From: Auanema rhodensis
Taxonomy: Eukaryota > Animalia > Nematoda
DNA: 64,000 nucleotides
Assembly (NCBI GenBank): GCA_964057225.1
Contig: OZ059898.1
Location: 17,608,001 to 17,672,000 of the forward strand
Direction of reading: 5' to 3'
The notes under the pieces are model-generated. The model was not told where the DNA came from and did not search any database. It was given only the letters and a program-made list of their open reading frames with translations. Shown here one piece after another: positions 3,001-43,900 of the stretch; the stretch's first letter is position 1, and each line of letters starts with the position of its first letter. The translations under genes and the position numbers were made by a program.

Positions 3001-6000
3001 AAAAGAAATCTAAAAACATCTACTTTTTGCTAAATTATTCTGAAATTTTTCGAAAAAATTTTTGTCAAAATGTTTTTGGAAGCAATGTTGAGTGTACATG
3101 GAAACTCAACATACACTAATGCATCATTTTTCAAACGATCATAACTAATTTTTGTATTAAGCGTATCTCAATGTAGTATAGTGCATTTGATGCGGATTTT
3201 TAAGCTGCGTCGATCTGTGTTATCAGATTTGCGCTAGCTTAAAAATGCACCGAGATATCAACTGATATAAGTTCACACTTATATCCTCGATTTTCACCCT
3301 GAAGAATTAATTTTTTCGTTGAATAACATTGTCCATCGTCTTTGCCTTGAAAAAAGAAATCTAAAAACATCTACTTTTTGCTAAATTATTCTGAAATTTT
3401 TCGAAAAAATTTTTGTCAAAATGTTTTTGGAAGCAATGTTGAGTGTACATGGAAACTCAACATACACTAATGCATCATTTTTCAAACGATCATAACTAAT
3501 TTTTGTATTAAGCGTATCTCAATGTAGTATAGTGCATTTGATGCGGATTTTTAAGCTGCGTCGATCTGTGTTATCAGATTTGCGCTAGCTTAAAAATGCA
3601 CCGAGATATCAACTGATATAAGTTCATACTTATATCCTCGATTTTCACCCTGAAGAATTAATTTTTTCGTTGAATAACATTGTCCATCGTCTTTGCCTTG
3701 AAAAAAGGAATCTAAAAACATCTACTTTTTGCTAAATTATTCTGAAATTTTTCGAAAAAATTTTTGTCAAAATGTTTTTGGAAGCAATGTTGAGTGTACA
3801 TGGAAACTCAACATACACTAATGCATCATTTTTCAAACGATCATAACTAATTTTTGTATTAAGCGTTTCTCAATGTAGTATAGTGCATTTGATGCGGATT
3901 TTTAAGCTGCGTCGATCTGTGTTGTCAGATTTGCGCTAGCTTAAAAATGCACCGAGATATCAACTGATATAAGTTCACACTTATATCCTCGATTTTCACC
4001 CTGAAGAAATAATTTTTTCGTTGAATAACATTGTCCATCGTCTTTGCCTTGAAAAAAGGAATCTAAAAACATCTACTTTTTGCTAAATTATTTTGAAATT
4101 TTTCGAAAAAATTTTTGTCAAAATGTTTTTGGAAGCAATGTTGAGTGTACATGGAAACTCAACATACACTAATGCATCATTTTTCAAACGATCATAACTA
4201 ATTTTTGTATTAAGCGTATCTCAATGTAGTATAGTGCATTCGATGCGGATTTTTAAGCTGCGTCGATCTGTGTTATCAGATTTGCTCTAGCTTAAAAATG
4301 CACCGAGATATCAACTGATATAAGTTCACACTTATATCCTCGATTTTCACCCTGAAGAAATAATTTTTTCGTTGAATAACATTGTCCATCGTCTTTGCCT
4401 TGAAAAAAGGAATCTAAAAACATCTACTTTTTGCTAAATTATTTCGAAATTTTTCGAAAAAATTTTTGTCAAAATGTTTTTGGAAGCAATGTTGAGTGTA
4501 CATGGAAACTCAACATACACTAATGCATCATTTTTCGAACGATCATAACTAATTTTTGTATTAAGCGTTTCTCAATGTAGTATAGTGCATTCGATGCGGA
4601 TTTTTAAGCTGCGTCGATCTGTGTTATCAGATTTGCGCTAGCTTAAAAATGCACCGAGATATCAACTGATATAAGTTCACACTTATATCCTCGATTTTCA
4701 CCCTGAAGAATTAATTTTTTCGTTGAATAACATTGTCCATCGTCTTTGCCTTGAAATAAGGAATCTAAAAACATTTACTTTTTGCTAAATTATTCTGAAA
4801 TTTTTCGAAAAAATTTTTGTCAAAATGTTTTTGGAAGCAATGTTGAGTGTACATGGAAACTCAACATACACTAATGCATCATTTTTCAAACGATCATAAC
4901 TAATTTTTGTATTAAGCGTTTCTCAATGTAGTATAGTGCATTCGATGCGGATTTTTAAGCTGCGTCGATCTGTGTTATCAGATTTGCGCTAGCTTAAAAA
5001 TGCACCGAGATATCAACTGATATAAGTTCACACTTATATCCTCGATTTTCACCCTGAAGAAATAATTTTTTCGTTGAATAACATTGTCCATCGTCTTTGC
5101 CTTGAAAAAAGGAATCTAAAAACATCTACTTTTTGCTAAAATATTTTGAAGTTTTTCGAAAAAATTTTTGTCAAAATGTTTTTGGAAGCAATGTTGAGTG
5201 TACATGGAAACTCAACATACACTAATGCATCATTTTTCAAACGATCATAACTAATTTTTGTATTAAGCGTTTCTCAATGTAGTATAGTGCATTCGATGCG
5301 GATTTTTAAGCTGCGTCGATCTGTGTTATCAGATTTGCGCTAGCTTAAAAATGCACCGAGATATCAACTGATATAAGTTCACACTTATATCCTCGATTTT
5401 CACCCTGAAGAATTAATTTTTTCGTTGAATAACATTGTCCATCGTCTTTGCCTTGAAAAAAGGAATCTAAAAACATCTACTTTTTGCTAAATTATTTTGA
5501 AGTTTTTCGAAAAAATTTTTGTCAAAATGTTTTTGGAAGCAATGTTGAGTGTACATGGAAACTCAACATACACTAATGCATCATTTTTCAAACGATCATA
5601 ACTAATTTTTGTATTAAGCGTTTCTCAATGTAGTATAGTGCATTCGATGCGGATTTTTAAGCTGCGTCGATCTGTGTTATCAGATTTGCGCTAGCTTAAA
5701 AATGCACCGAGATATCAACTGATATAAGTTCACACTTATATCCTCGATTTTCACCCTGAAGAATTAATTTTTTCGTTGAGTAACATTGTCCATCGTCTTT
5801 GCCTTGAAAAAAGAAATCTAAAAACATCTACTTTTTGCTAAATTATTCTGAAATTTTTCGAAAAAATTTTTGTCAAAATGTTTTTGGAAGCAATGTTGAG
5901 TGTACATGGAAACTCAACATACACTAATGCATCATTTTTCGAACGATCATAACTAATTTTTGTATTAAGCGTTTCTCAATGTAGTATAGTGCATTCGATG

Positions 6001-9000
6001 CGGATTTTTAAGCTGCGTCGATCTGTGTTATCAGATTTGCGCTAGCTTAAAAATGCACCGAGATATCAACTGATATAAGTTCACACTTATATCCTCGATT
6101 TTCACCCTGAAGAATTAATTTTTTCGTTGAATAACATTGTCCATCGTCTTTGCCTTGAAAAAAGAAATCTAAAAACATCTACTTTTTGCTAAATTATTCT
6201 GAAATTTTTCGAAAAAATTTTTGTCAAAATGTTTTTGGAAGCAATGTTGAGTGTACATGGAAACTCAACATACACTAATGCATCATTTTTCAAACGATCA
6301 TAACTAATTTTTGTATTAAGCGTATCTCAATGTAGTATAGTGCATTTGATGCGGATTTTTAAGCTGCGTCGATCTGTGTTATCAGATTTGCGCTAGCTTA
6401 AAAATGCACCGAGATATCAACTGATATAAGTTCATACTTATATCCTCGATTTTCACCCTGAAGAATTAATTTTTTCGTTGAATAACATTGTCCATCGTCT
6501 TTGCCTTGAAAAAAGGAATCTAAAAACATCTACTTTTTGCTAAATTATTCTGAAATTTTTCGAAAAAATTTTTGTCAAAATGTTTTTGGAAGCAATGTTG
6601 AGTGTACATGGAAACTCAACATACACTAATGCATCATTTTTCGAACGATCATAACTAATTTTTGTATTAAGCGTTTCTCAATGTAGTATAGTGCATTCGA
6701 TGCGGATTTTTAAGCTGCGTCGATCTGTGTTATCAGATTTGCGCTAGCTTAAAAATGCACCGAGATATCAACTGATATAAGTTCATACTTATATCCTCGA
6801 TTTTCACCCTGAAGAATTAATTTTTTCGTTGAATAACATTGTCCATCGTCTTTGCCTTGAAAAAAGGAATCTAAAAACATCTACTTTTTGCTAAATTATT
6901 CTGAAATTTTTCGAAAAAATTTTTGTCAAAATGTTTTTGGAAGCAATGTTGAGTGTACATGGAAACTCAACATACACTAATGCATCATTTTTCAAACGAT
7001 CATAACTAATTTTTGTATTAAGCGTTTCTCAATGTAGTATAGTGCATTTGATGCGGATTTTTAAGCTGCGTCGATCTGTGTTGTCAGATTTGCGCTAGCT
7101 TAAAAATGCACCGAGATATCAACTGATATAAGTTCACACTTATATCCTCGATTTTCACCCTGAAGAAATAATTTTTTCGTTGAATAACATTGTCCATCGT
7201 CTTTGCCTTGAAAAAAGGAATCTAAAAACATCTACTTTTTGCTAAATTATTTTGAAATTTTTCGAAAAAATTTTTGTCAAAATGTTTTTGGAAGCAATGT
7301 TGAGTGTACATGGAAACTCAACATACACTAATGCATCATTTTTCAAACGATCATAACTAATTTTTGTATTAAGCGTATCTCAATGTAGTATAGTGCATTC
7401 GATGCGGATTTTTAAGCTGCGTCGATCTGTGTTATCAGATTTGCGCTAGCTTAAAAATGCACCGAGATATCAACTGATATAAGTTCACACTTATATCCTC
7501 GATTTTCACCCTGAAGAAATAATTTTTTCGTTGAATAACATTGTCCATCGTCTTTGCCTTGAAAAAAGGAATCTAAAAACATCTACTTTTTGCTAAATTA
7601 TTTCGAAATTTTTCGAAAAAATTTTTGTCAAAATGTTTTTGGAAGCAATGTTGAGTGTACATGGAAACTCAACATACACTAATGCATCATTTTTCAAACG
7701 ATCATAACTAATTTTTGTATTAAGCGTATCTCAATGTAGTATAGTGCATTCGATGCGGATTTTTAAGCTGCGTCGATCTGTGTTATCAGATTTGCGCTAG
7801 CTTAAAAATGCACCGAGATATCAACTGATATAAGTTCACACTTATATCCTCGATTTTCACCCTGAAGAAATAATTTTTTCGTTGAATAACATTGTCCATC
7901 GTCTTTGCCTTGAAAAAAGGAATCTAAAAACATCTACTTTTTGCTAAATTATTTCGAAATTTTTCGAAAAAATTTTTGTCAAAATGTTTTTGGAAGCAAT
8001 GTTGAGTGTACATGGAAACTCAACATACACTAATGCATCATTTTTCAAACGATCATAACTAATTTTTGTATTAAGCGTTTCTCAATGTAGTATAGTGCAT
8101 TTGATGCGGATTTTTAAGCTGCGTCGATCTGTGTTATCAGATTTGCGCTAGCTTAAAAATGCACCGAGATATCAACTGATATAAGTTCACACTTATATCC
8201 TCGATTTTCACCCTGAAGAATTAATTTTTTCGTTGAATAACATTGTCCATCGTCTTTGCCTTGAAAAAAGAAATCTAAAAACATCTACTTTTTGCTAAAT
8301 TATTCTGAAATTTTTCGAAAAAATTTTTGTCAAAATGTTTTTGGAAGCAATGTTGAGTGTACATGGAAACTCAACATACACTAATGCATCATTTTTCAAA
8401 CGATCATAACTAATTTTTGTATTAAGCGTATCTCAATGTAGTATAGTGCATTTGATGCGGATTTTTAAGCTGCGTCGATCTGTGTTATCAGATTTGCGCT
8501 AGCTTAAAAATGCACCGAGATATCAACTGATATAAGTTCATACTTATATCCTCGATTTTCACCCTGAAGAATTAATTTTTTCGTTGAATAACATTGTCCA
8601 TCGTCTTTGCCTTGAAAAAAGGAATCTAAAAACATCTACTTTTTGCTAAATTATTCTGAAATTTTTCGAAAAAATTTTTGTCAAAATGTTTTTGGAAGCA
8701 ATGTTGAGTGTACATGGAAACTCAACATACACTAATGCATCATTTTTCAAACGATCATAACTAATTTTTGTATTAAGCGTATCTCAATGTAGAATAGTGC
8801 ATTCGATGCGGATTTTTAAGCTGCGTCGATCTGTGTTATCAGATTTGCGCTAGCTTAAAAATGCACCGAGATATCAACTGATATAAGTTCACACTTATAT
8901 CCTCGATTTTCACCCTGAAGAAATAATTTTTTCGTTGAATAACATTGTCCATCGTCTTTGCCTTGAAAAAAGGAATCTAAAAACATCTACTTTTTGCTAA

Positions 9001-12000
9001 ATTATTTCGAAATTTTTCGAAAAAATTTTTGTCAAAATGTTTTTGGAAGCAATGTTGAGTGTACATGGAAACTCAACATACACTAATGCATCATTTTTCA
9101 AACGATCATAACTAATTTTTGTATTAAGCGTTTCTCAATGTAGTATAGTGCATTTGATGCGGATTTTTAAGCTGCGTCGATCTGTGTTATCAGATTTGCG
9201 CTAGCTTAAAAATGCACCGAGATATCAACTGATATAAGTTCACACTTATATCCTCGATTTTCACCCTGAAGAAATAATTTTTTCGTTGAATAACATTGTC
9301 CATCTTCTTTGCCTTGAAAAAAGAAATCTAAAAACATCTACTTTTTGCTAAATTATTTTGAAGTTTTTCGAAAAAATTTTTGTCAAAATGTTTTTGGAAG
9401 CAATGTTGAGTGTACATGGAAACTCAACATACACTAATGCATCATTTTTCAAACGATCATAACTAATTTTTGTATTAAGCGTATCTCAATGTAGTATAGT
9501 GCATTTGATGCGGATTTTTAAGCTGCGTCGATCTGTGTTATCAGATTTGCGCTAGCTTAAAAATGCACCGAGATATCAACTGATATAAGTTCACACTTAT
9601 ATCCTCGATTTTCACCCTGAAGAAATAATTTTTTCGTTGAATAACATTGTCCATCGTCTTTGCCTTGAAGAAAGGAATCTAAAAACATCTACTTTTTGCT
9701 AAATTATTCTGAAATTTTTCGAAAAAATTTTTGTCAAAATGTTTTTGGAAGCAATGTTGAGTGTACATGGAAACTCAACATACACTAATGCATCATTTTT
9801 CAAACGATCATAACTAATTTTTGTATTAAGCGTATCTCAATGTAGTATAGTGCATTTGATGCGGATTTTTAAGCTGCGTCGATCTGTGTTATCAGATTTG
9901 CGCTAGCTTAAAAATGCACCGAGATATCGACTGATATAAGTTCATACTTATATCCTCGATTTTCACCCTGAAGAATTATTTTTTTCGTTGAATAACATTG
10001 TCCATCGTCTTTGCCTTGAAAAAAGGAATCTAAAAACATCTACTTTTTGCTAAATTATTCTGAAATTTTTCGAAAAAATTTTTGTCAAAATGTTTTTGGA
10101 AGCAATGTTGAGTGTACATGGAAACTCAACATACACTAATGCATCATTTTTCGAACGATCATAACTAATTTTTGTATTAAGCGTTTCTCAATGTAGTATA
10201 GTGCATTCGATGCGGATTTTTAAGCTGCGTCGATCTGTGTTATCAGATTTGCGCTAGCTTAAAAATGCACCGAGATATCAATTGATATAAGTTCACACTT
10301 ATATCCTCGATTTTCACCCTGAAGAATTAATTTTTTCGTTGAATAACATTGTCCATCGTCTTTGCCTTGAAAAAAGAAATCTAAAAACATCTACTTTTTG
10401 CTAAATTATTCTGAAATTTTTCGAAAAAATTTTTGTCAAAATGTTTTTGGAAGCAATGTTGAGTGTACATGGAAACTCAACATACACTAATGCATCATTT
10501 TTCAAACGATCATAACTAATTTTTGTATTAAGCGTATCTCAATGTAGTATAGTGCATTTGATGCGGATTTTTAAGCTGCGTCGATCTGTGTTATCAGATT
10601 TGCGCTAGCTTAAAAATGCACCGAGATATCAACTGATATAAGTTCATACTTATATCCTCGATTTTCACCCTGAAGAATTAATTTTTTCGTTGAATAACAT
10701 TGTCCATCGTCTTTGCCTTGAAAAAAGGAATCTAAAAACATCTACTTTTTGCTAAATTATTCTGAAATTTTTCGAAAAAATTTTTGTCAAAATGTTTTTG
10801 GAAGCAATGTTGAGTGTACATGGAAACTCAACATACACTAATGCATCATTTTTCAAACGATCATAACTAATTTTTGTATTAAGCGTATCTCAATGTAGTA
10901 TAGTGCATTTGATGCGGATTTTTAAGCTGCGTCGATCTGTGTTATCAGATTTGCGCTAGCTTGAAAATGCACCGAGATATCAACTGATATAAGTTCATAC
11001 TTATATCCTCGATTTTCACCCTGAAGAATTAATTTTTTCGTTGAATAACATTGTCCATCGTCTTTGCCTTGAAAAAAGGAATCTAAAAACATCTACTTTT
11101 TGCTAAATTATTCTGAAATTTTTCGAAAAAATTTTTGTCAAAATGTTTTTGGAAGCAATGTTGAGTGTACATGGAAACTCAACATACACTAATGCATCAT
11201 TTTTCAAACGATCATAACTAATTTTTGTATTAAGCGTTTCTCAATGTAGTATAGTGCATTTGATGCGGATTTTTAAGCTGCGTCGATCTGTGTTGTCAGA
11301 TTTGCGCTAGCTTAAAAATGCACCGAGATATCAACTGATATAAGTTCACACTTATATCCTCGATTTTCACCCTGAAGAAATAATTTTTTCGTTGAATAAC
11401 ATTGTCCATCGTCTTTGCCTTGAAAAAAGGAATCTAAAAACATCTACTTTTTGCTAAATTATTTTGAAATTTTTCGAAAAAATTTTTGTCAAAATGTTTT
11501 TGGAAGCAATGTTGAGTGTACATGGAAACTCAACATACACTAATGCATCATTTTTCAAACGATCATAACTAATTTTTGTATTAAGCGTATCTCAATGTAG
11601 TATAGTGCATTCGATGCGGATTTTTAAGCTGCGTCGATCTGTGTTATCAGATTTGCGCTAGCTTAAAAATGCACCGAGATATCAACTGATATAAGTTCAC
11701 ACTTATATCCTCGATTTTCACCCTGAAGAAATAATTTTTTCGTTGAATAACATTGTCCATCGTCTTTGCCTTGAAAAAAGGAATCTAAAAACATCTACTT
11801 TTTGCTAAATTATTTCGAAATTTTTCGAAAAAATTTTTGTCAAAATGTTTTTGGAAGCAATGTTGAGTGTACATGGAAACTCAACATACACTAATGCATC
11901 ATTTTTCAAACGATCATAACTAATTTTTGTATTAAGCGTATCTCAATGTAGTATAGTGCATTCGATGCGGATTTTTAAGCTGCGTCGATCTGTGTTATCA

Positions 12001-15000
12001 GATTTGCGCTAGCTTAAAAATGCACCGAGATATCAACTGATATAAGTTCACACTTATATCCTCGATTTTCACCCTGAAGAAATAATTTTTTCGTTGAATA
12101 ACATTGTCCATCGTCTTTGCCTTGAAAAAAGGAATCTAAAAACATCTACTTTTTGCTAAATTATTTCGAAATTTTTCGAAAAAATTTTTGTCAAAATGTT
12201 TTTGGAAGCAATGTTGAGTGTACATGGAAACTCAACATACACTAATGCATCATTTTTCAAACGATCATAACTAATTTTTGTATTAAGCGTTTCTCAATGT
12301 AGTATAGTGCATTTGATGCGGATTTTTAAGCTGCGTCGATCTGTGTTATCAGATTTGCGCTAGCTTAAAAATGCACCGAGATATCAACTGATATAAGTTC
12401 ACACTTATATCCTCGATTTTCACCCTGAAGAATTAATTTTTTCGTTGAATAACATTGTCCATCGTCTTTGCCTTGAAAAAAGAAATCTAAAAACATCTAC
12501 TTTTTGCTAAATTATTCTGAAATTTTTCGAAAAAATTTTTGTCAAAATGTTTTTGGAAGCAATGTTGAGTGTACATGGAAACTCAACATACACTAATGCA
12601 TCATTTTTCAAACGATCATAACTAATTTTTGTATTAAGCGTATCTCAATGTAGTATAGTGCATTTGATGCGGATTTTTAAGCTGCGTCGATCTGTGTTAT
12701 CAGATTTGCGCTAGCTTAAAAATGCACCGAGATATCAACTGATATAAGTTCATACTTATATCCTCGATTTTCACCCTGAAGAATTAATTTTTTCGTTGAA
12801 TAACATTGTCCATCGTCTTTGCCTTGAAAAAAGGAATCTAAAAACATCTACTTTTTGCTAAATTATTCTGAAATTTTTCGAAAAAATTTTTGTCAAAATG
12901 TTTTTGGAAGCAATGTTGAGTGTACATGGAAACTCAACATACACTAATGCATCATTTTTCAAACGATCATAACTAATTTTTGTATTAAGCGTATCTCAAT
13001 GTAGTATAGTGCATTTGATGCGGATTTTTAAGCTGCGTCGATCTGTGTTATCAGATTTGCGCTAGCTTAAAAATGCACCGAGATATCAACTGATATAAGT
13101 TCATACTTATATCCTCGATTTTCACCCTGAAGAATTAATTTTTTCGTTGAATAACATTGTCCATCGTCTTTGCCTTGAAAAAAGGAATCTAAAAACATCT
13201 ACTTTTTGCTAAATTATTTCGAAATTTTTCGAAAAAATTTTTGTCAAAATGTTTTTGGAAGCAATGTTGAGTGTACATGGAAACTCAACATACACTAATG
13301 CATCATTTTTCAAACGATCATAACTAATTTTTGTATTAAGCGTTTCTCAATGTAGTATAGTGCATTTGATGCGGATTTTTAAGCTGCGTCGATCTGTGTT
13401 ATCAGATTTGCGCTAGCTTAAAAATGCACCGAGATATCAACTGATATAAGTTCACACTTATATCCTCGATTTTCACCCTGAAGAATTAATTTTTTCGTTG
13501 AATAACATTGTCCATCGTCTTTGCCTTGAAAAAAGAAATCTGAAAACATCTACTTTTTGCTAAATTATTCTGAAATTTTTCGAAAAAATTTTTGTCAAAA
13601 TGTTTTTGGAAGCAATGTTGAGTGTACATGGAAACTCAACATACACTAATGCATCATTTTTCAAACGATCATAACTAATTTTTGTATTAAGCGTATCTCA
13701 ATGTAGTATAGTGCATTTGATGCGGATTTTTAAGCTGCGTCGATCTGTGTTATCAGATTTGCGCTAGCTTAAAAATGCACCGAGATATCAACTGATATAA
13801 GTTCATACTTATATCCTCGATTTTCACCCTGAAGAATTAATTTTTTCGTTGAATAACATTGTCCATCGTCTTTGCCTTGAAAAAAGGAATCTAAAAACAT
13901 CTACTTTTTGCTAAATTATTCTGAAATTTTTCGAAAAAATTTTTGTCAAAATGTTTTTGGAAGCAATGTTGAGTGTACATGGAAACTCAACATACACTAA
14001 TGCATCATTTTTCGAACGATCATAACTAATTTTTGTATTAAGCGTTTCTCAATGTAGTATAGTGCATTCGATGCGGATTTTTAAGCTGCGTCGATCTGTG
14101 TTATCAGATTTGCGCTAGCTTAAAAATGCACCGAGATATCAACTGATATAAGTTCACACTTATATCCTCGATTTTCACCCTGAAGAATTAATTTTTTCGT
14201 TGAATAACATTGTCCATCGTCTTTGCCTTGAAAAAAGAAATCTAAAAACATCTACTTTTTGCTAAATTATTCTGAAATTTTTCGAAAAAATTTTTGTCAA
14301 AATGTTTTTGGAAGCAATGTTGAGTGTACATGGAAACTCAACATACACTAATGCATCATTTTTCAAACGATCATAACTAATTTTTGTATTAAGCGTATCT
14401 CAATGTAGTATAGTGCATTTGATGCGGATTTTTAAGCTGCGTCGATCTGTGTTATCAGATTTGCGCTAGCTTAAAAATGCACCGAGATATCAACTGATAT
14501 AAGTTCATACTTATATCCTCGATTTTCACCCTGAAGAATTAATTTTTTCGTTGAATAACATTGTCCATCGTCTTTGCCTTGAAAAAAGGAATCTAAAAAC
14601 ATCTACTTTTTGCTAAATTATTCTGAAATTTTTCGAAAAAATTTTTGTCAAAATGTTTTTGGAAGCAATGTTGAGTGTACATGGAAACTCAACATACACT
14701 AATGCATCATTTTTCAAACGATCATAACTAATTTTTGTATTAAGCGTTTCTCAATGTAGTATAGTGCATTTGATGCGGATTTTTAAGCTGCGTCGATCTG
14801 TGTTGTCAGATTTGCGCTAGCTTAAAAATGCACCGAGATATCAACTGATATAAGTTCACACTTATATCCTCGATTTTCACCCTGAAGAAATAATTTTTTC
14901 GTTGAATAACATTGTCCATCTTCTTTGCCTTGAAAAAAGAAATCTAAAAACATCTACTTTTTGCTAAATTATTTTGAAGTTTTTCGAAAAAATTTTTGTC

Positions 15001-33000: not shown

Positions 33001-36000
33001 TCTCAATGTAGTATAGTGCATTCGATGCGGATTTTTAAGCTGCGTCGATCTGTGTTGTCAGATTTGCGCTAGCTTAAAAATGCACCGAGATATCAACTGA
33101 TATAAGTTCACACTTATATCCTCGATTTTCACCCTGAAGAATTAATTTTTTCGTTGAATAACATTGTCCATCGTCTTTGCCTTGAAAAAAGAAATCTAAA
33201 AACATCTACTTTTTGCTAAATTATTCTGAAATGTTTCGAAAAAATTTTTGTCAAAATGTTTTTGGAAGCAATGTTGAGTGTACATGGAAACTCAACATAC
33301 ACTAATGCATCATTTTTCAAACGATCATAACTAATTTTTGTATTAAGCGTATCTCAATGTAGTATAGTGCATTTGATGCGGATTTTTAAGCTGCGTCGAT
33401 CTGTGTTATCAGATTTGCGCTAGCTTAAAAATGCACCGAGATATCAACTGATATAAGTTCACACTTATATCCTCGATTTTCACCCTGAAGAATTAATTTT
33501 TTCGTTGAATAACATTGTCCATCGTCTTTGCCTTGAAAAAAGGAATCTAAAAACATTTACTTTTTGCTAAATTATTCTGAAATTTTTCGAAAAAATTTTT
33601 GTCAAAATGTTTTTGGAAGCAATGTTGAGTGTACATGGAAACTCAACATACACTAATGCATCATTTTTCAAACGATCATAACTAATTTTTGTATTAAGCG
33701 TTTCTCAATGTAGTATAGTGCATTCGATGCGGATTTTTAAGCTGCGTCGATCTGTGTTATCAGATTTGCGCTAGCTTAAAAATGCACCGAGATATCAACT
33801 GATATAAGTTCACACTTATATCCTCGATTTTCACCCTGAAGAAATAATTTTTTCGTTGAATAACATTGTCCATCGTCTTTGCCTTGAAAAAAGGAATCTA
33901 AAAACATCTACTTTTTGCTAAATTATTTTGAAGTTTTTCGAAAAAATTTTTGTCAAAATGTTTTTGGAAGCAATGTTGAGTGTACATGGAAACTCAACAT
34001 ACACTAATGCATCATTTTTCAAACGATCATAACTAATTTTTGTATTAAGCGTTTCTCAATGTAGTATAGTGCATTCTATGCGGATTTTTAAGCTGCGTCG
34101 ATCTGTGTTATCAGATTTGCGCTAGCTTAAAAATGCACCGAGATATCAACTGATATAAGTTCACACTTATATCCTCGATTTTCACCCTGAAGAATTAATT
34201 TTTTCGTTGAGTAACATTGTCCATCGTCTTTGCCTTGAAAAAAGGAATCTAAAAACATCTACTTTTTGCTAAATTATTCTGAAATTTTTCGAAAAAATTT
34301 TTGTCAAAATGTTTTTGGAAGCAATGTTGAGTGTACATGGAAACTCAACATACACTAATGCATCATTTTTCGAACGATCATAACTAATTTTTGTATTAAG
34401 CGTTTCTCAATGTAGTATAGTGCATTCGATGCGGATTTTTAAGCTGCGTCGATCTGTGTTATCAGATTTGCGCTAGCTTAAAATTGCACCGAGATATCAA
34501 CTGATATAAGTTCACACTTATATCCTCGATTTTCACCCTGAAGAATTAATTTTTTCGTTGAATAACATTGTCCATCGTCTTTGCCTTGAAAAAAGAAATC
34601 TAAAAACATCTACTTTTTGCTAAATTATTCTGAAATTTTTCGAAAAAATTTTTGTCAAAATGTTTTTGGAAGCAATGTTGAGTGTACATGGAAACTCAAC
34701 ATACACTAATGCATCATTTTTCAAACGATCATAACTAATTTTTGTATTAAGCGTATCTCAATGTAGTATAGTGCATTTGATGCGGATTTTTAAGCTGCGT
34801 CGATCTGTGTTATCAGATTTGCGCTAGCTTAAAAATGCACCGAGATATCAACTGATATAAGTTCATACTTATATCCTCGATTTTCACCCTGAAGAATTAA
34901 TTTTTTCGTTGAATAACATTGTCCATCGTCTTTGCCTTGAAAAAAGGAATCTAAAAACATCTACTTTTTGCTAAATTATTCTGAAATTTTTCGAAAAAAT
35001 TTTTGTCAAAATGTTTTTGGAAGCAATGTTGAGTGTACATGGAAACTCAACATACACTAATGCATCATTTTTCAAACGATCATAACTAATTTTTGTATTA
35101 AGCGTTTCTCAATGTAGTATAGTGCATTTGATGCGGATTTTTAAGCTGCGTCGATCTGTGTTGTCAGATTTGCGCTAGCTTAAAAATGCACCGAGATATC
35201 AACTGATATAAGTTCACACTTATATCCTCGATTTTCACCCTGAAGAAATAATTTTTTTGTTGAATAACATTGTCCATCTTCTTTGCCTTGAAAAAAGGAA
35301 TCTAAAAACATCTACTTTTTGCTAAATTATTTTGAAGTTTTTCGAAAAAATTTTTGTCAAAATGTTTTTGGAAGCAATGTTGAGTGTACATGGAAACTCA
35401 ACATACACTAATGCATCATTTTTCAAACGATCATAACTAATTTTTGTATTAAGCGTTTCTCAATGTAGTATAGTGCATTCGATGCGGATTTTTAAGCTGC
35501 GTCGATCTGTGTTGTCAGATTTGCGCTAGCTTAAAAATGCACCGAGATATCAACTGATATAAGTTCACACTTATATCCTCGATTTTCACCCTGAAGAATT
35601 AATTTTTTCGTTGAATAACATTGTCCATCGTCTTTGCCTTGAAAAAAGGAATCTAAAAACATCTACTTTTTGCTAAATTATTCTGAAATTTTTCGAAAAA
35701 ATTTTTGTCAAAATGTTTTTGGAAGCAATGTTGAGTGTACATGGAAACTCAACATACACTAATGCATCATTTTTTGAACGATCATAACTAATTTTTGTAT
35801 TAAGCGTTTCTCAATGTAGTATAGTGCATTCGATGCGGATTTTTAAGCTGCGTCGATCTGTGTTATCAGATTTGCGCTAGCTTAAAAATGCACCGAGATA
35901 TCAACTGATATAAGTTCACACTTATATCCTCGATTTTCACCCTGAAGAATTAATTTTTTCGTTGAATAACATTGTCCATCGTCTTTGCCTTGAAAAAAGA

Positions 36001-36658
36001 AATCTAAAAACATCTACTTTTTGCTAAATTATTCTGAAATTTTTCGAAAAAATTTTTGTCAAAATGTTTTTGGAAGCAATGTTGAGTGTACATGGAAACT
36101 CAACATACACTAATGCATCATTTTTCGAACGATCATAACTAATTTTTGTATTAAGCGTTTCTCAATGTAGTATAGTGCATTCGATGCGGATTTTTAAGCT
36201 GCGTCGATCTGTGTTATCAGATTTGCGCTAGCTTAAAAATGCACCGAGATATCAACTGATATAAGTTCACACTTATATCCTCGATTTTCACCCTGAAGAA
36301 ATAATTTTTTCGTTGAATAACATTGTCCATCTTCTTTGCCTTGAAAAAAGGAATCTAAAAACATCTACTTTTTGCTAAATTATTTTGAAGTTTTTCGAAA
36401 AAATTTTTGTCAAAATGTTTTTGGAAGCAATGTTGAGTGTACATGGAAACTCAACATACACTAATGCATCATTTTTCAAACGATCATAACTAATTTTTGT
36501 ATTAAGCGTATCTCAATGTAGTATAGTGCATTTGATGCGGATTTTTAAGCTGCGTCGATCTGTGTTATCAGATTTGCGCTAGCTTAAAAATGCACCGAGA
36601 TATCAACTGATATAAGTTCACACTTATATCCTCGATTTTCACCCTGAAGAATTAATTT
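1..36658. repeat. 351-bp tandem satellite array, left block (~104 monomers, no net indels)
   Basis: Monomer start AGCGT(A/T)TCTCAATG recurs at 1, 352, 3511, 7021, 14041, 21061, 28081 and 35101, all exactly 1+351n. Copies differ by a few recurrent SNPs. Confidence 0.99.
36651..36658 (+). repeat. 8-bp target site duplication ATTAATTT (partner 37916-37923; repeated at 39671-39678 and 40936-40943)
   Basis: Uninterrupted monomers read GAAGA-ATTAATTT-TTTCG. The insertion adds 1257+8 bp, which matches the downstream monomer phase (41141 = 1+110x351+2x1265). Confidence 0.95.
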
Positions 36659-36707
36659 GGCTCTAGTGCAGTTTTCCCCCCCCCGCCTAAGCCCCGCCCC
36701 TTTTGCC
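36659..36707 (+). repeat. Left terminal inverted repeat, copy 1
   Basis: GGCTCTAGTGCAGTTTTCCCCCCCCCGCCTAAGCCCCGCCCCTTTTGCC. The reverse complement of the right end reads GGTTCAAGTGCAGTTTTTCCCCCCCTGGCCCTAAGCCCCGCCCCTTTTGCC. Confidence 0.93.
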
Positions 36708-36845
36708 AAACGGTGCATACTTTTTGTCAACCTGTATAATTTTAAACCGGCGGGAGACATACCTTTCAGAACGGGGGGTTTGGGGGGATTCCCATTCTCG
36801 GTGTTTAGTTTTGATTTACTTTTGATTAAATTTAATTATAATATT

Positions 36846-36851
36846 TTTATT
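36846..36851 (-). promoter_or_regulatory. Putative polyadenylation signal AATAAA overlapping the tandem stop codons (TAA TAA) of the transposase
   Basis: Minus strand GAA TAA TAAAAAT. The context is AT-rich, so this may be chance. Confidence 0.4.
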
Positions 36852-37777
36852 ATTCACGGTTATTAATATCATTCATAAAATCATTAATATCACATAACAT
36901 ATTTTCAAAAAGGTCTGAATTTATGTGTCTACGGCGCCACATAAATTCACACAAATAACCATCTAACATGTGAGTCTGTACCCCCCATAAACGCTTAAAT
37001 TTGGCTTTCGCAATGTTCCAAACTCCCTCTATAGTATTAGTATGAGCTGCGGTTTCGGGGTCAACAAAATTATATGAATGGTTAACCGTCAGATGGGTGT
37101 ATTGCTTGTTTAAAGATTCTAATCCCCCATAAGCGCGCCAGCAGTCTGATATTATAGTACTTCCAGGATTTATTGAGAACTCAATACATTCCTGGAGAGT
37201 AGCTCTACTTCTATCAGGCACTGCATACAAAAAACATTCCTTTGTCTCACGACATATCCCCCCAAACACCCATTGCTCTGGCTTAACCCTACCAACATTA
37301 TATTTACGCTTAGATACAAGGGTCTCATCTATCTCTACAGTCATATTAGGGCCCCCTATTTTAACTGGATTTTTTAAAAGGGAGTGGGCACAGACCTCAC
37401 GTAAAAAATTATTATAGTCTACTACAGTATGATTGGATCCTATTCCCAGCTCATCTTTGCAAAATTGAACTGTAGTATACTCCTTTGTCCAACAGTAGAT
37501 GAAGAGTATGAAGTTAGCATACGATAAGTGAGAACCTATTTAATTTTAATTATTTACATCTTAAATGTGAAGCTATACCTTCTAAAAATGTTCTTTTTTT
37601 TAATTGCTGTTCTTTCCTACAGCTTTTTTTGGGGCATCTCCACCGTTCACGCTCTATTGAGAGCTTCATTTCAGATTGGCAGAGGCTACAGATCATAGCA
37701 TCTGGTAACAACCCCTTTTCTTGCAAAAATCGAATTGCATTTTCTTTAGTTGCAACTTTATCTCTTAGAGCGAACAT
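36850..37777 (-). CDS. Merlin/IS1595-type DDE transposase, two exons (37777-37579 + 37535-36850), 294 aa
   Basis: Exon 1 encodes a putative Zn finger (CSLC...WRCPKKSC) up to RTFLEG. After a 43-nt GT..AG intron the frame continues without stops: (G)SHLSYANFILFIYCWTKEYTTVQFCKDELGIGSNHTVVDYNNFLREVCAHSLLKNPVKIGGPN, then into the 164-aa ORF MTVEIDE. 199+686=885 nt = 294 aa + stop. Putative catalytic D (EIDE), D (ISDCW) and E (TIEG). Confidence 0.9.
37536..37578 (-). other. Predicted 43-nt spliceosomal intron (phase 1) in transposase copy 1
   Basis: Minus strand GAAG|GTATAGCT...TAAAATTAAATAG|GTTCT. It is AT-rich, contains the in-frame stop, and its removal restores one continuous frame. Confidence 0.85.
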
Positions 37778-37864
37778 GCTGTCAGATTGACTTCGAGATA
37801 TCGATTGTTTTTTATTTGATATTTATTATAATTTTTTTAATTTTTAAGCAACTGTGTGCTTTTC

Positions 37865-37915
37865 GGCAAAAGGGGCGGGGCTTAGGGCCAGGGGGGGAAA
37901 AACTGCACTTGAACC
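37865..37915 (-). repeat. Right terminal inverted repeat, copy 1
   Basis: Imperfect inverted match to 36659-36707. Confidence 0.93.
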
Positions 37916-39678
37916 ATTAATTTTTTCGTTGAATAACATTGTCCATCGTCTTTGCCTTGAAAAAAGGAATCTAAAAACATCTACTTTTTGCTAAATTATT
38001 CTGAAATTTTTCGAAAAAATTTTTGTCAAAATGTTTTTGGAAGCAATGTTGAGTGTACATGGAAACTCAACATACACTAATGCATCATTTTTCAAACGAT
38101 CATAACTAATTTTTGTATTAAGCGTTTCTCCATGTAGTATAGTGCATTTGATGCGGATTTTTAAGCTGCGTCGATCTGTGTTATCAGATTTGCGCTAGCT
38201 TAAAAATGCACCGAGATATCAACTGATATAAGTTCACACTTATATCCTCGATTTTCACCCTGAAGAAATAATTTTTTTGTTGAATAACATTGTCCATCTT
38301 CTTTGCCTTGAAAAAAGGAATCTAAAAACATCTACTTTTTGCTAAATTATTTTGAAGTTTTTCGAAAAAATTTTTGTCAAAATGTTTTTGGAAGCAATGT
38401 TGAGTGTACATGGAAACTCAACATACACTAATGCATCATTTTTCAAACGATCATAACTAATTTTTGTATTAAGCGTTTCTCAATGTAGTATAGTGCATTC
38501 GATGCGGATTTTTAAGCTGCGTCGATCTGTGTTGTCAGATTTGCGCTAGCTTAAAAATGCACCGAGATATCAACTGATATAAGTTCACACTTATATCCTC
38601 GATTTTCACCCTGAAGAATTAATTTTTTCGTTGAATAACATTGTCCATCGTCTTTGCCTTGAAAAAAGGAATCTAAAAACATCTACTTTTTGCTAAATTA
38701 TTCTGAAATTTTTCGAAAAAATTTTTGTCAAAATGTTTTTGGAAGCAATGTTGAGTGTACATGGAAACTCAACATACACTAATGCATCATTTTTTGAACG
38801 ATCATAACTAATTTTTGTATTAAGCGTTTCTCAATGTAGTATAGTGCATTCGATGCGGATTTTTAAGCTGCGTCGATCTGTGTTATCAGATTTGCGCTAG
38901 CTTAAAAATGCACCGAGATATCAACTGATATAAGTTCACACTTATATCCTCGATTTTCACCCTGAAGAATTAATTTTTTCGTTGAATAACATTGTCCATC
39001 GTCTTTGCCTTGAAAAAAGAAATCTAAAAACATCTACTTTTTGCTAAATTATTCTGAAATTTTTCGAAAAAATTTTTGTCAAAATGTTTTTGGAAGCAAT
39101 GTTGAGTGTACATGGAAACTCAACATACACTAATGCATCATTTTTCGAACGATCATAACTAATTTTTGTATTAAGCGTTTCTCAATGTAGTATAGTGCAT
39201 TCGATGCGGATTTTTAAGCTGCGTCGATCTGTGTTATCAGATTTGCGCTAGCTTAAAAATGCACCGAGATATCAACTGATATAAGTTCACACTTATATCC
39301 TCGATTTTCACCCTGAAGAAATAATTTTTTCGTTGAATAACATTGTCCATCTTCTTTGCCTTGAAAAAAGGAATCTAAAAACATCTACTTTTTGCTAAAT
39401 TATTTTGAAGTTTTTCGAAAAAATTTTTGTCAAAATGTTTTTGGAAGCAATGTTGAGTGTACATGGAAACTCAACATACACTAATGCATCATTTTTCAAA
39501 CGATCATAACTAATTTTTGTATTAAGCGTATCTCAATGTAGTATAGTGCATTTGATGCGGATTTTTAAGCTGCGTCGATCTGTGTTATCAGATTTGCGCT
39601 AGCTTAAAAATGCACCGAGATATCAACTGATATAAGTTCACACTTATATCCTCGATTTTCACCCTGAAGAATTAATTT
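37916..39678. repeat. 351-bp satellite, five monomer-lengths between the two transposon copies
   Basis: 1763 bp = 5x351 + 8-bp TSD; same monomer and same orientation as the flanks. Confidence 0.98.
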
Positions 39679-39727
39679 GGCTCTAGTGCAGTTTTCCCCC
39701 CCCCGCCTAAGCCCCGCCCCTTTTGCC
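39679..39727 (+). repeat. Left TIR, copy 2
   Basis: Same as the copy 1 left TIR. Confidence 0.93.
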
Positions 39728-39869
39728 AAACGGTGCATACTTTTTGTCAACCTGTATAATTTTAAACCGGCGGGAGACATACCTTTCAGAACGGGGGGTT
39801 TGGGGGGATTCCCATTCTCGGTGTTTAGTTTTGATTTACTTTTGATTAAATTTAATTATAATATTTTTA

Positions 39870-40797
39870 TTATTCACGGTTATTAATATCATTCATAAAA
39901 TCATTAATATCACATAACATATTTTCAAAAAGGTCTGAATTTATGTGTCTACGGCGCCACATAAATTCACACAAATAACCATCTAACATGTGAGTCTGTA
40001 CCCCCCATAAACGCTTAAATTTGGCTTTCGCAATGTTCCAAACTCCCTCTATAGTATTAGTATGAGCTGCGGTTTCGGGGTCAACAAAATTATATGAATG
40101 GTTAACCGTCAGATGGGTGTATTGCTTGTTTAAAGATTCTAATCCCCCATAAGCGCGCCAGCAGTCTGATATTATAGTACTTCCAGGATTTATTGAGAAC
40201 TCAATACATTCCTGGAGAGTAGCTCTACTTCTATCAGGCACTGCATACAAAAAACATTCCTTTGTCTCACGACATATCCCCCCAAACACCCATTGCTCTG
40301 GCTTAACCCTACCAACATTATATTTACGCTTAGATACAAGGGTCTCATCTATCTCTACAGTCATATTAGGGCCCCCTATTTTAACTGGATTTTTTAAAAG
40401 GGAGTGGGCACAGACCTCACGTAAAAAATTATTATAGTCTACTACAGTATGATTGGATCCTATTCCCAGCTCATCTTTGCAAAATTGAACTGTAGTATAC
40501 TCCTTTGTCCAACAGTAGATGAAGAGTATGAAGTTAGCATACGATAAGTGAGAACCTATTTAATTTTAATTATTTACATCTTAAATGTGAAGCTATACCT
40601 TCTAAAAATGTTCTTTTTTTTAATTGCTGTTCTTTCCTACAGCTTTTTTTGGGGCATCTCCACCGTTCACGCTCTATTGAGAGCTTCATTTCAGATTGGC
40701 AGAGGCTACAGATCATAGCATCTGGTAACAACCCCTTTTCTTGCAAAAATCGAATTGCATTTTCTTTAGTTGCAACTTTATCTCTTAGAGCGAACAT
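39870..40797 (-). CDS. Merlin/IS1595-type DDE transposase, copy 2, two exons (40797-40599 + 40555-39870), 294 aa
   Basis: Same sequence as copy 1 at +3020; identical ORF translations. Confidence 0.9.
40556..40598 (-). other. Predicted 43-nt intron in transposase copy 2
   Basis: Identical to the copy 1 intron. Confidence 0.85.
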
Positions 40798-40884
40798 GCT
40801 GTCAGATTGACTTCGAGATATCGATTGTTTTTTATTTGATATTTATTATAATTTTTTTAATTTTTAAGCAACTGTGTGCTTTTC

Positions 40885-40935
40885 GGCAAAAGGGGCGGGG
40901 CTTAGGGCCGGGGGGGGAAAAACTGCACTTGAACC
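40885..40935 (-). repeat. Right TIR, copy 2
   Basis: Same as the copy 1 right TIR except G at 40910. Confidence 0.93.
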
Positions 40936-43900
40936 ATTAATTTTTTCGTTGAATAACATTGTCCATCGTCTTTGCCTTGAAAAAAGGAATCTAAAAACAT
41001 CTACTTTTTGCTAAATTATTCTGAAATTTTTCGAAAAAATTTTTGTCAAAATGTTTTTGGAAGCAATGTTGAGTGTACATGGAAACTCAACATACACTAA
41101 TGCATCATTTTTCAAACGATCATAACTAATTTTTGTATTAAGCGTTTCTCCATGTAGTATAGTGCATTTGATGCGGATTTTTAAGCTGCGTCGATCTGTG
41201 TTATCAGATTTGCGCTAGCTTAAAAATGCACCGAGATATCAACTGATATAAGTTCACACTTATATCCTCGATTTTCACCCTGAAGAATTAATTTTTTCGT
41301 TGAATAACATTGTCCATCGTCTTTGCCTTGAAAAACGAAATCTGAAAACATCTACTTTTTGCTAAATTATTTTGAAATTTTTCGAAAAAATTTTTGTCAA
41401 AATGTTTTTGGAAGCAATGTTGAGTGTACATGGAAACTCAACATACACTAATGCATCATTTTTCAAACGATCATAACTAATTTTTGTATTAAGCGTATCT
41501 CAATGTAGTATAGTGCATTCGATGCGGATTTTTAAGCTGCGTCGATCTGTGTTATCAGATTTGCGCTAGCTTAAAAATGCACCGAGATATCAACTGATAT
41601 AAGTTCACACTTATATCCTCGATTTTCACCCTGAAGAAAAAATTTTTTCGTTGAATAACATTGTCCATCGTCTTTGCCTTGAAAAAAGGAATCTAAAAAC
41701 ATCTACTTTTTGCTAAATTATTTTGAAATTTTTCGAAAAAATTTTTGTCAAAATGTTTTTGGAAGCAATGTTGAGTGTACATGGAAACTCAACATACACT
41801 AATGCATCATTTTTCAAACGATCATAACTAATTTTTGTATTAAGCGTATCTCAATGTAGTATAGTGCATTTGATGCGGATTTTTAAGCTGCGTCGATCTG
41901 TGTTATCAGATTTGCGCTAGCTTAAAAATGCACCGAGATATCAACTGATATAAGTTCACACTTATATCCTCGATTTTCACCCTGAAGAAATAATTTTTTC
42001 GTTGAATAACATTGTCCATCTTCTTTGCCTTGAAAAAAGGAATCTAAAAACATCTACTTTTTGCTAAATTATTTTGAAGTTTTTCGAAAAAATTTTTGTC
42101 AAAATGTTTTTGGAAGCAATGTTGAGTGTACATGGAAACTCAACATACACTAATGCATCATTTTTCAAACGATCATAACTAATTTTTGTATTAAGCGTAT
42201 CTCAATGTAGTATAGTGCATTTGATGCGGATTTTTAAGCTGCGTCGATCTGTGTTATCAGATTTGCGCTAGCTTAAAAATGCACCGAGATATCAACTGAT
42301 ATAAGTTCACACTTATATCCTCGATTTTCACCCTGAAGAATTAATTTTTTCGTTGAATAACATTGTCCATCGTCTTTGCCTTGAAAAAAGGAATCTAAAA
42401 ACATCTACTTTTTGCTAAATTATTCTGAAATTTTTCGAAAAAATTTTTGTCAAAATGTTTTTGGAAGCAATGTTGAGTGTACATGGAAACTCAACATACA
42501 CTAATGCATCATTTTTCAAACGATCATAACTAATTTTTGTATTAAGCGTTTTTCAATGTAGTATAGTGCATTCGATGCGGATTTTTAAGCTGCGTCGATC
42601 TGTGTTATCAGATTTGCGCTAGCTTAAAAATGCACCGAGATATCAACTGATATAAGTTCACACTTATATCCTCGATTTTCACCCTGAAGAAATAATTTTT
42701 TCGTTGAATAACATTGTCCATCGTCTTTGCCTTGAAAAAGGAATCTAAAAACATCTACTTTTTGCTAAATTATTCTGAAATTTTTCGAAAAAATTTTTGT
42801 CAAAATGTTTTTGGAAGCAATGTTGAGTGTACATGGAAACTCAACATACACTAATGCATCATTTTTCAAACGATCATAACTAATTTTTGTATTAAGCGTT
42901 TCTCAATGTAGTAAAGTGCATTCGATGCGGATTTTTAAGCTGCGTCGATCTGTGTTATCAGATTTGCGCTAGCTTAAAAATGCACCGAGACATCAACTGA
43001 TATAAGTTCACACTTATATCCTCGATTTTCACCCTGAAGAATTACTTTTTTCGTTGAATAACATTGTCCATCGTCTTTGCCTTGAAAAAAGGAATCTAAA
43101 AACATCTACTTTTTGCTAAATTATTTTGAAATTTTTCGAAAAAATTTTTGTCAAAATGTTTTTGGAAGCAATGTTGAGTGTACATGGAAACTCAACATAC
43201 ACTAATGCATCATTTTTCAAACGATCATAACTAATTTTTGTATTAAGCGTTTCTCAATGTAGTATAGTGCATTTGATGCGGATTGTTAAGCTGCGTCGAT
43301 CTGTGTTATCAGATTTGCGCTAGCTTAAAAATGCACCGAGATATCAACTGATATAAGTTCACACTTATATCCTCGATTTTCACCCTGAAGAATTTATTTT
43401 TTCGTTGAATAACATTGTCCATCGTCTTTGCCTTGAAAAAAGGAATCTAAAAACATCTACTTTTTGCTAAATTATTTTGAAATTTTTCGAAAAAATTTTT
43501 GTCAAAATGTTTTTGGAAGCAATGTTGAGTGTACATGGAAACTCAACATACACTAATGCATCATTTTTCAAACGATCATAACTAATTTCTGTATTAAGCG
43601 TTTCTCAATGTAGTATAGTGCATTCGATGCGGATTTTTAAGCTGCGTCGATCTGTGTTATCAGATTTGGGCTAGCTTAAAAATGCACCGAGATATCAACT
43701 GATATAAGTTCACACTTATATCCTCGATTTTCACCCTGAAGAATTAATTTTTTCGTTGAATAACATTGTCCATCGTCTTTGCCTTGAAAAAAGGAATCTA
43801 AAAACATCTACTTTTTGCTAAATTATTCTGAAAGTTTTCGAAAAAATTTTTGTCAAAATGTTTTTGGAAGCAATGTTGAGTGTACATGGAAACTCAACAT

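Follow-up and report, generated by a model that had tools for sequence, protein, structure and literature searches.

Two tandem copies of a Merlin-type transposon in a 351-bp satellite array of Auanema rhodensis very probably derive from one insertion by out-of-register satellite duplication

The window, the whole 64,000-bp stretch of DNA analyzed here, is made up of about 175 monomers of a 351-bp satellite interrupted solely by two copies of a 1257-bp DNA transposon, whose sequence features place it in the Merlin superfamily. The two copies descend from a single insertion and lie in two directly adjacent units of 3020 bp, and the explanation that we favor, a homology-guided, out-of-register duplication of satellite sequence that doubled this one insertion, is very probably correct as a whole. 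A doubling by satellite turnover rather than by transposition had been proposed in the first-pass annotation of this DNA and is borne out by the identical insertion site and TSD of the two copies, the identical haplotypes of their flanks, a chimeric monomer between the units and private variants that both copies share. The array and the duplication are laid out as follows.

1-64000, + strand: satellite array with a 351-bp monomer (TRF and monomer matrix)
35164-38183, + strand: duplicated unit A, 3020 bp, comprising five satellite monomers, Merlin and the TSD; boundaries slide by 84 bp
38184-41203, + strand: duplicated unit B (comparison at offset +3020)
38045-38395, + strand: chimeric junction monomer between the two units
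38184-38267, + strand: junction window of 84 bp, with equivalents at 35164-35247 and 41204-41287

The length of the unit is accounted for exactly by its parts (5 x 351 + 1257 + 8 = 3020). When positions 35164-38267 (3104 bp) are aligned with their counterpart at offset +3020, a single mismatch is found, A at 37890 versus G at 40910, which agrees with the earlier count of about one difference in 3 kb and with the very recent event read from it. This mismatch falls in the element; the satellite to the left (35164-36658, 0/1495 bp) and to the right (37916-38267, 0/352 bp) is identical, and the flanking monomer haplotypes do match at +3020, as had been claimed, with 0 mismatches in 1847 bp versus a mean pairwise difference of 7.5/351, or about 2.1%, over all monomer pairs of the window. 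Mismatches at the same offset restart leftward at 35163 and 35111 and rightward from 38268, where 32 occur in the following 1411 bp. The two units are thus 99.97% identical, the monomers inside one unit being 3-10/351 bases apart. In the distance matrix, monomers 100-103 match monomers 105-108 without a single difference, yet are 3-7 bases apart among themselves; identical pairs make up only 0.86% of all monomer pairs in the window, and the chance expectation for a diagonal run of four such pairs is about 1e-4. The duplication exceeds in length every other near-identical repeat of the window and is its only multi-monomer repeat (five units) with an identical length (3104 bp) equal to or greater than its offset, the other repeats spanning one or two monomers.

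The monomer between the units is a clean chimera: its 5' part has 0 mismatches to the monomer after copy 2 and 2 to the upstream monomer, and its 3' part has 0 mismatches to monomer 35025-35375, versus 7. The junction, previously placed in a satellite stretch of some 85 bp, maps to 84 bp (35164-35247 / 38184-38267). In one respect the first-pass annotation went too far, since "higher-order satellite repeat" overstates a structure of two units only: these are more alike than the monomers within them, but periodicity over many units is absent from the array, where mean monomer distance is flat (6.5-7.4) across lags 1-40, and the spacings of related copies on C1 are irregular.

36659-37915, - strand (gene strand): Merlin copy 1, 1257 bp
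39679-40935, - strand (gene strand): Merlin copy 2, 1257 bp, equal to copy 1 except at 40910
36651-36658 (left) and 37916-37923 (right), + strand: 8-bp TSD ATTAATTT of copy 1
39671-39678 (left) and 40936-40943 (right): 8-bp TSD ATTAATTT of copy 2
37890, + strand: only difference between the units, A in copy 1 and G at 40910

Both copies occupy one monomer position with one TSD, as first described; their common flanks read ...GAAGAATTAATTT/GGCTC...GAACC/ATTAATTTTTTCG, with the 8-bp ATTAATTT at each. The two copies share four private variants that set them apart from all other genomic copies, and they are therefore sisters. The A at 37890 is the derived state, because copy 2 and all ten other genomic copies have G at this position. 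We note that the difference at 37890/40910 adjoins a run of G and may be a sequencing error.

Assignment of the element to Merlin, and to the IS1595-type DDE transposons, is made from its sequence, in which domain, TSD, TIR and catalytic triad all agree. The defining features of the superfamily are an 8- or 9-bp TSD, TIRs beginning with 5'-GG, and D, D and E residues in three blocks, the first two separated by 50-70 residues (PMC8101967).

36659-36710, + strand: left terminal inverted repeat (TIR), about 52 bp, imperfect, starting 5'-GG; partner at 37862-37915
37579-37777, - strand: transposase exon 1, 66 codons plus 1 base; in copy 2, 40599-40797
37536-37578, - strand: predicted GT..AG intron of 43 nt, containing an in-frame stop, with the downstream exon in another frame
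36850-37535, - strand: transposase exon 2, DDE_Tnp_IS1595; in copy 2, 39870-40555

The ends of the element, GGCTCTAGTGCAG... on the left and, as reverse complement, GGTTCAAGTGCAG... on the right, both start with 5'-GG, and TSDs of 8 bp are found at three loci (ATTAATTT, TCCATGTA and CATTTACG). Searched separately against Pfam, the translation of exon 2 matches PF12762 (DDE_Tnp_IS1595; E = 1e-17, 65 bits versus a cut-off of 27), and that of exon 1 carries a putative zinc ribbon (CxxC...CxxxxC) whose match to Zn_ribbon_IS1595 (E = 0.0036) falls short of the curated cut-off. The candidate catalytic motifs VEIDET, ISDCW and NTIEGVW, spaced D(60)D(38)E, were read by eye rather than from a curated alignment. 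The predicted intron is kept in 12/12 copies, and open exons and the DDE triad in 11/11 full copies; the transposase gene of the window does look intact, as had been stated, both predicted exons being open in both copies. The element thus resembles other members of the Merlin superfamily and IS1595-IS1016 (Feschotte 2004; PMC8101967) in its DDE_Tnp_IS1595 domain, 8-bp TSD, 5'-GG TIRs and a D..D spacing of about 60 residues in its D..D..E triad, and differs in being very compact (1257 bp), with a predicted 43-nt intron and a weak N-terminal zinc-ribbon match; zinc-ribbon domains have been described in few eukaryotic Merlins, two of them from Caenorhabditis briggsae (PMC8101967).

Identical flanks at +3020 together with the clean chimeric junction monomer lead us to the following sequence of events. 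One Merlin would have inserted once into a 351-bp monomer, generating the TSD ATTAATTT. Later, a homology-guided event between monomers five units out of register, either unequal exchange between sister chromatids or homologues or template switching or slippage during replication or repair, would have produced the 3020-bp tandem duplication, the exchange point lying in an 84-bp stretch common to both parental monomers and leaving a chimeric monomer between the units. A second transposase gene would so have arisen without transposition. The pathway of recombination and its trigger are, like the correspondence of the assembly to real molecules, what we infer from these structures.

Amplification of the same kind is observed at a second locus. 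Exact matches to the left end of the element number only ten across the genome, two in the window and eight on contig C1, in another array built of this satellite; a genome-wide count of satellite-Merlin junctions, put forward as a check in the first-pass annotation, thus gives ten intact left ends, which go back to only two insertion events. On C1 a single site, different from that of the window, and the TSD TCCATGTA are common to all copies, which are oriented opposite to the satellite and lie at spacings of 32, about 25, 37, 9, 0, 12, 3 and 4 monomers. Since indels of 1-2 bp occur there, C1 flanks were compared by BLAST blocks and monomer typing; flanking monomer types and internal variants are common to copies g, h and i and to copies b and c. 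A further copy, in non-satellite DNA on C3, is flanked by a third TSD, CATTTACG. Site-specific insertion was considered and rejected, the three loci having three different TSDs. The family totals 12 young copies, 11 full-length and one truncated, and satellite insertions have been amplified twofold at the window locus and ninefold on C1. Near-identical transposon copies are usually taken as the sign of a recent burst of jumping. Nine of these 12 copies, however, arose by duplication of satellite blocks after only two insertions, and transposition activity would therefore be overestimated if read from copy counts and ages.

Merlin is likely to be multiplying passively with the satellite; passive carriage is an assumption, because repair of breaks made by the transposase predicts an identical structure. 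Cutting of the element or of one end might be followed by copying from the sister chromatid, with both broken ends copying the element and some flank, and by annealing of the new strands out of register in the satellite, to give [Merlin]-chimeric monomer-monomers-[Merlin] and render a cut-and-paste element locally replicative in tandem repeats. We regard such triggering by Merlin itself as unlikely, yet it is the strongest of the alternatives. It predicts the observed structure exactly, and a Merlin inside every such duplication, and the only complete multi-monomer duplication of the window does contain one. Background duplication was gauged from satellite free of Merlin, 61 kb of it in the window and 57 kb on C1: the former holds no complete duplication of more than two monomers, and recent complete duplications account, by a rough estimate, for only about 6% of the Merlin-free satellite, so that the presence of Merlin in the sole large recent duplication of the window would be a modest coincidence under a purely spontaneous process. 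Both satellite insertions of Merlin have been amplified, whereas a 1407-bp Tc1/mariner-like element located 178 bp from C1 copy a is single-copy in 80 kb of C1. Two aberrant C1 copies are rearranged at the left terminus, one a head-to-tail Merlin dimer in which a 5-bp spacer connects the right flank, TCCAT(G), with the exact terminus, (G)GCTC, the other having a deletion that spans the left end, with 15 nt of filler, and the retention of open exons and triad in all full copies also counts in its favor. The expansion of tandem repeats by break repair is, moreover, established in yeast, as Paques, Leung and Haber are reported to have found in 1998. Against triggering by Merlin, neither excision footprints nor empty sites with TSD were found at either Merlin site among the 174 and 155 monomers of the two arrays. 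The C1 array also contains Merlin-free tandem duplications of two and five monomers, which show that the background process works in steps of this size and needs no transposon, and is homogeneous overall (median of two differences per monomer), so that fast turnover could carry along any insertion. The comparison is drawn from only two amplified loci and one control. Were the triggering model correct, as we think improbable, a Merlin in satellite would multiply by means of its own transposase, each repair being able to add the element and a variable number of monomers; in germline-restricted satellite, a cut-and-paste transposon would then acquire a local copy-and-stay mode and itself drive array expansion.

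The duplicated structure may conceivably be mis-assembled, or a variant present in only part of the worm population. Satellite arrays are difficult to assemble, the units are almost identical, and the published Auanema rhodense germline assembly (HiFi/hifiasm, inbred line), with which the genome agrees in the AT-1 probe, has about 29x HiFi coverage in repeat blocks, from which an assembler might have placed twice a 3-kb block with one real copy. We consider this very unlikely. The chimeric monomer at 38045-38395 is absent from any single-copy structure, so reads must contain such sequence; the units differ at 37890/40910; the line was inbred, the assembly had been purged of haplotigs, and most HiFi reads map uniquely in repeats according to the authors; and the same type of structure recurs eight times on C1 at varied spacings. 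A structure of 6 kb should fit within the length of HiFi reads. Hardly credible, finally, are two independent insertions at one preferred target five monomers apart, or gene conversion of Merlin and its flanks downstream: both satellite sites do lie within or beside short palindromes (AATTAATT in the window, GTTGAGT..ACTCAAC on C1) and gene conversion has been proposed for duplicated ATHILA in Arabidopsis centromeres, but independent insertion leaves the 1847 bp of identical flanking satellite and the chimeric monomer unexplained and is at odds with unrelated TSDs at the three loci, and a 3104-bp conversion tract would have to end, by an unlikely coincidence, within 84 bp of where its donor begins.

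Copying of transposons by satellite recombination is already known, and the Merlin duplication, which we attribute to an out-of-register satellite event, is a new example of it. In Arabidopsis CEN180 arrays, ATHILA retrotransposons were duplicated after integration in five cases, which the authors tied to the mechanism making higher-order repeats (Naish et al. 2021, bioRxiv 10.1101/2021.05.30.446350). There too a transposon in a satellite was later copied with flanking satellite by array recombination; Merlin, by contrast, is a small DNA transposon of a nematode, its transposase gene is apparently intact, and its units are directly adjacent at 3 kb, rather than 8.9-538 kb apart, with a junction resolved to 84 bp and a second locus of nine copies. 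Transposon-derived satellites can be seeded by tandem TE dimers (McGurk and Barbash 2018, PMC5932611), likewise tandem copies that arise without normal transposition and are expandable by unequal exchange, but the window unit combines satellite and transposon and its dimer formed inside an existing array. The head-to-tail dimer on C1 comes closer to that model, although its flanks misfit double insertion, the expected extra ACC being absent.

The satellite itself is probably germline-restricted. It is distinct from AT-1, XT-1, XT-2 and XR-1, whose published probes have no match in the window. Should it prove to be AT-2, the germline-only repeat of Auanema rhodense, the Merlin copies would reside in DNA that body cells discard; insertions would then be expected to burden the host only slightly, and transposase genes that look intact could accumulate. 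Exact matches to a 34-mer of the monomer number 90,742 genome-wide, and the satellite totals at least 32 Mb. In this mass of sequence the Merlin insertion acts as a natural tag, which places one recombination junction within 84 bp and gives the size of a single expansion step as five monomers here, alongside steps of two to five monomers seen on C1 without the transposon.

The entire 64-kb window is a single array of a 351-bp satellite (G+C ~31%), interrupted only by two insertions of 1257 bp each, the Merlin elements copy 1 (36659-37915) and copy 2 (39679-40935). Cutting at a conserved anchor delimited 174 full monomers, each 350 or 351 bp long; any two differ on average at 7.5 bases (2.1%), and just 0.86% of the pairs are identical. 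The two elements are one base apart (37890 A versus 40910 G), have identical junctions and share the 8-bp target-site duplication (TSD) ATTAATTT. At an offset of +3020, the satellite is free of mismatches over 1495 bp to the left of the element and 352 bp to its right; identity ends at 35163 and 38268, where mismatches resume, with 32 following within 1411 bp. Monomers 100-103 are exactly monomers 105-108, and 3-7 bases separate the monomers of one set. Four variants common to both window copies are found in no other copy, and the A at 37890 is the derived state because all ten other copies carry G. The monomer between the two 3020-bp units (38045-38395) compares with its putative parents as follows:

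First 139 bp: 0 mismatches to the monomer after copy 2, 2 mismatches to 35025-35375
Middle 84 bp: matches both parental monomers
Last 128 bp: 7 mismatches to the monomer after copy 2, 0 mismatches to 35025-35375

This monomer is a clean chimera, as expected from an out-of-register, homology-guided exchange, and the 84 bp common to both parents place the duplication junction at 38184-38267. The factual statements of the first-pass annotation all hold: one monomer position and TSD for both copies, flanking monomer haplotypes repeated at +3020, a junction inside an ~85-bp stretch of satellite, and about one difference in 3 kb. A homology-guided, out-of-register event duplicated the Merlin-bearing satellite block, as the chimeric junction shows; the structure fits unequal exchange as well as replication or repair slippage.

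A scan of all offsets for near-identical repeats in the window returned the +3020 repeat as the longest (identical length 3104 bp) and, duplications of one and two monomers aside, as the only one whose identical length reaches its offset. The next two blocks, 2105 bp (6699-8803 versus 10911-13015, offset 12 monomers) and 1462 bp (1814-3275 versus 4973-6434, offset 9 monomers), are shorter than their offsets and are either older, partly overwritten duplications or gene-conversion tracts. The locus had also been called a nascent higher-order repeat. Mean monomer distance in the window is flat (6.5-7.4 across lags 1-40) and the array is thus without higher-order periodicity. As a metaphor for two units that term is fair, but the array does not qualify as a higher-order repeat. 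The units (35164-38183 and 38184-41203) differ at a single base out of 3020 bp. If nematodes mutate at ~2e-9 per site per generation, the duplication would be roughly 1e5 generations old, within a Poisson range of two orders of magnitude and with a downward bias from gene conversion, if any.

The predicted transposase gene of copy 1 has two exons:

37777-37579, minus strand, transposase exon 1
37535-36850, minus strand, transposase exon 2

The predicted intron between them (43 nt, GT..AG) includes a stop codon in frame and leaves exon 2 in a different frame. Searched separately, exon 2 matches Pfam DDE_Tnp_IS1595 (E = 1e-17) and exon 1 gives a weak, below-cut-off match to the IS1595 zinc ribbon (E = 0.0036), a domain reported in just a few eukaryotic Merlins (PMC8101967). 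A CxxC...CxxxxC pattern is present in exon 1 (37580-37777, minus strand). Motifs VEIDET, ISDCW and NTIEGVW supply a D(60)D(38)E triad whose spacing is within the range for Merlin (PMC8101967), and the element ends in imperfect inverted repeats of ~52 bp starting 5'-GG. Domain, triad, 5'-GG ends and 8-bp TSD are the defining Merlin features listed in the same study. The exons are open and the intron kept in 11 of 11 full-length copies.

An element search of the genome recovered these 11 full-length copies (identity at least 97%) and one truncated copy, at three loci:

Window, contig C6: 2 copies, TSD ATTAATTT, in the 351-bp satellite
Contig C1, 18,735,364-18,790,895 (L031-L038): 8 full-length and 1 truncated copies, TSD TCCATGTA, in the same 351-bp satellite, opposite orientation
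Contig C3: 1 copy, TSD CATTTACG, in non-repetitive DNA

The genome-wide junction count suggested in the first-pass annotation gave 10 exact left ends, two in the window and eight on C1. All nine C1 copies share one TSD and one monomer site, with 32, ~25, 37, 9, 0, 12, 3 and 4 monomers of satellite between successive copies. Of these, copies g, h and i have flanking monomer types 2-22-45(-6) in common, and copies b and c share flanking types 21-22 as well as internal variants. Site-specific insertion is ruled out by the three unrelated targets, so duplication must explain why each array has the element at a single site only. Transposition thus did not produce nine of the 12 young copies. Window and C1 copies are ~0.3% different, so the family as a whole is young. 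The C1 cluster is a more advanced case of the window's amplification. Short palindromes lie in or beside both satellite target sites (AATTAATT at 36645-36665 in the window; on C1, GTTGAGT-N10-ACTCAAC); three loci are too few to support a claim of target preference.

The first-pass annotation had viewed the doubling as passive satellite turnover. Complete Merlin-free tandem duplications do occur in the C1 array (two monomers, n=3; five monomers, n=1, at C1:18,767,141/18,768,896), and the window has others of one and two monomers; the satellite therefore takes such steps unaided, which supports the passive reading. Three points nevertheless speak against a purely passive view: the sole complete window duplication of more than two monomers contains Merlin, both satellite insertions of the family have been amplified, and two aberrant C1 copies are rearranged at the left terminus of the element. 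At C1:18777873-18780406 (L036), two copies stand head to tail with only TCCAT (five of eight TSD bases) between them, the right flank TCCAT(G) being joined to the exact left terminus (G)GCTC with 1 nt of microhomology; a double insertion does not fit. At C1:18759395-18760440 (L034), a deletion across the left end has removed the first 249 bp of the element; satellite homology ends at monomer column 44 and is followed by a 15-nt filler, AAAATAATCAAAATA, and then Merlin, which looks like an end-joining scar. Excision, two-ended copying from the sister chromatid and misaligned annealing in the satellite would give exactly the observed structure, but no excision footprints were found at Merlin sites in the window and C1 arrays and the sample is small, and we consider this course of events unlikely. 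Mis-assembly as the source of the two copies is highly improbable, given that a single-copy structure would not contain the chimeric monomer, that the units are not identical, that HiFi reads from an inbred line underlie the assembly and that similar structures recur on C1.

Post-insertion duplication in satellite arrays has been documented in Arabidopsis centromeres, with five cases of ATHILA that the authors tied to the mechanism generating higher-order repeats (bioRxiv 10.1101/2021.05.30.446350), and tandem transposon dimers have been described as satellite seeds in Drosophila (PMC5932611). The window is therefore an unusually clean new example of a known process, here involving a DNA transposon whose gene looks intact and a nematode satellite that is probably restricted to the germline.

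The Auanema rhodense preprint describes a germline assembly of 180.9 Mb in seven chromosomes, for which an inbred line was sequenced with PacBio HiFi and assembled with hifiasm; it also reports that somatic cells lose ~61% of the genome, for the most part blocks of tandem repeats. Exact genome matches to a 34-mer taken from the 351-bp monomer number 90,742, near-equal on both strands, and the satellite totals at least 31.8 Mb (~18% of the genome) on at least two chromosomes. The AT-1 probe of the preprint has 115,040 genome matches with a 176-bp period, from the very end of C1. The satellite matches none of the AT-1, XT-1, XT-2 and XR-1 probes and is therefore, by elimination, probably AT-2, the second autosomal terminal repeat, which is eliminated. 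On C1, a 1407-bp Tc1/mariner-like element (18736805-18738211, L032; 29-bp inverted ends CAGTCCTGTGCGATGAAGG..., TA duplication) is separated from Merlin copy a by 178 bp, and the 80 kb read on C1 contains no further copy of it. An extra TA occurs at its insertion position in eight other monomers, among them those adjoining copies b and c, and could reflect either an old polymorphism or scars of excision. The C1 array (18725001-18794238) has a median of 2 differences per monomer and 10% identical pairs, and the far less homogeneous C6 array a median of 7 and 0.9%; the turnover rate is therefore unequal between arrays of one satellite.
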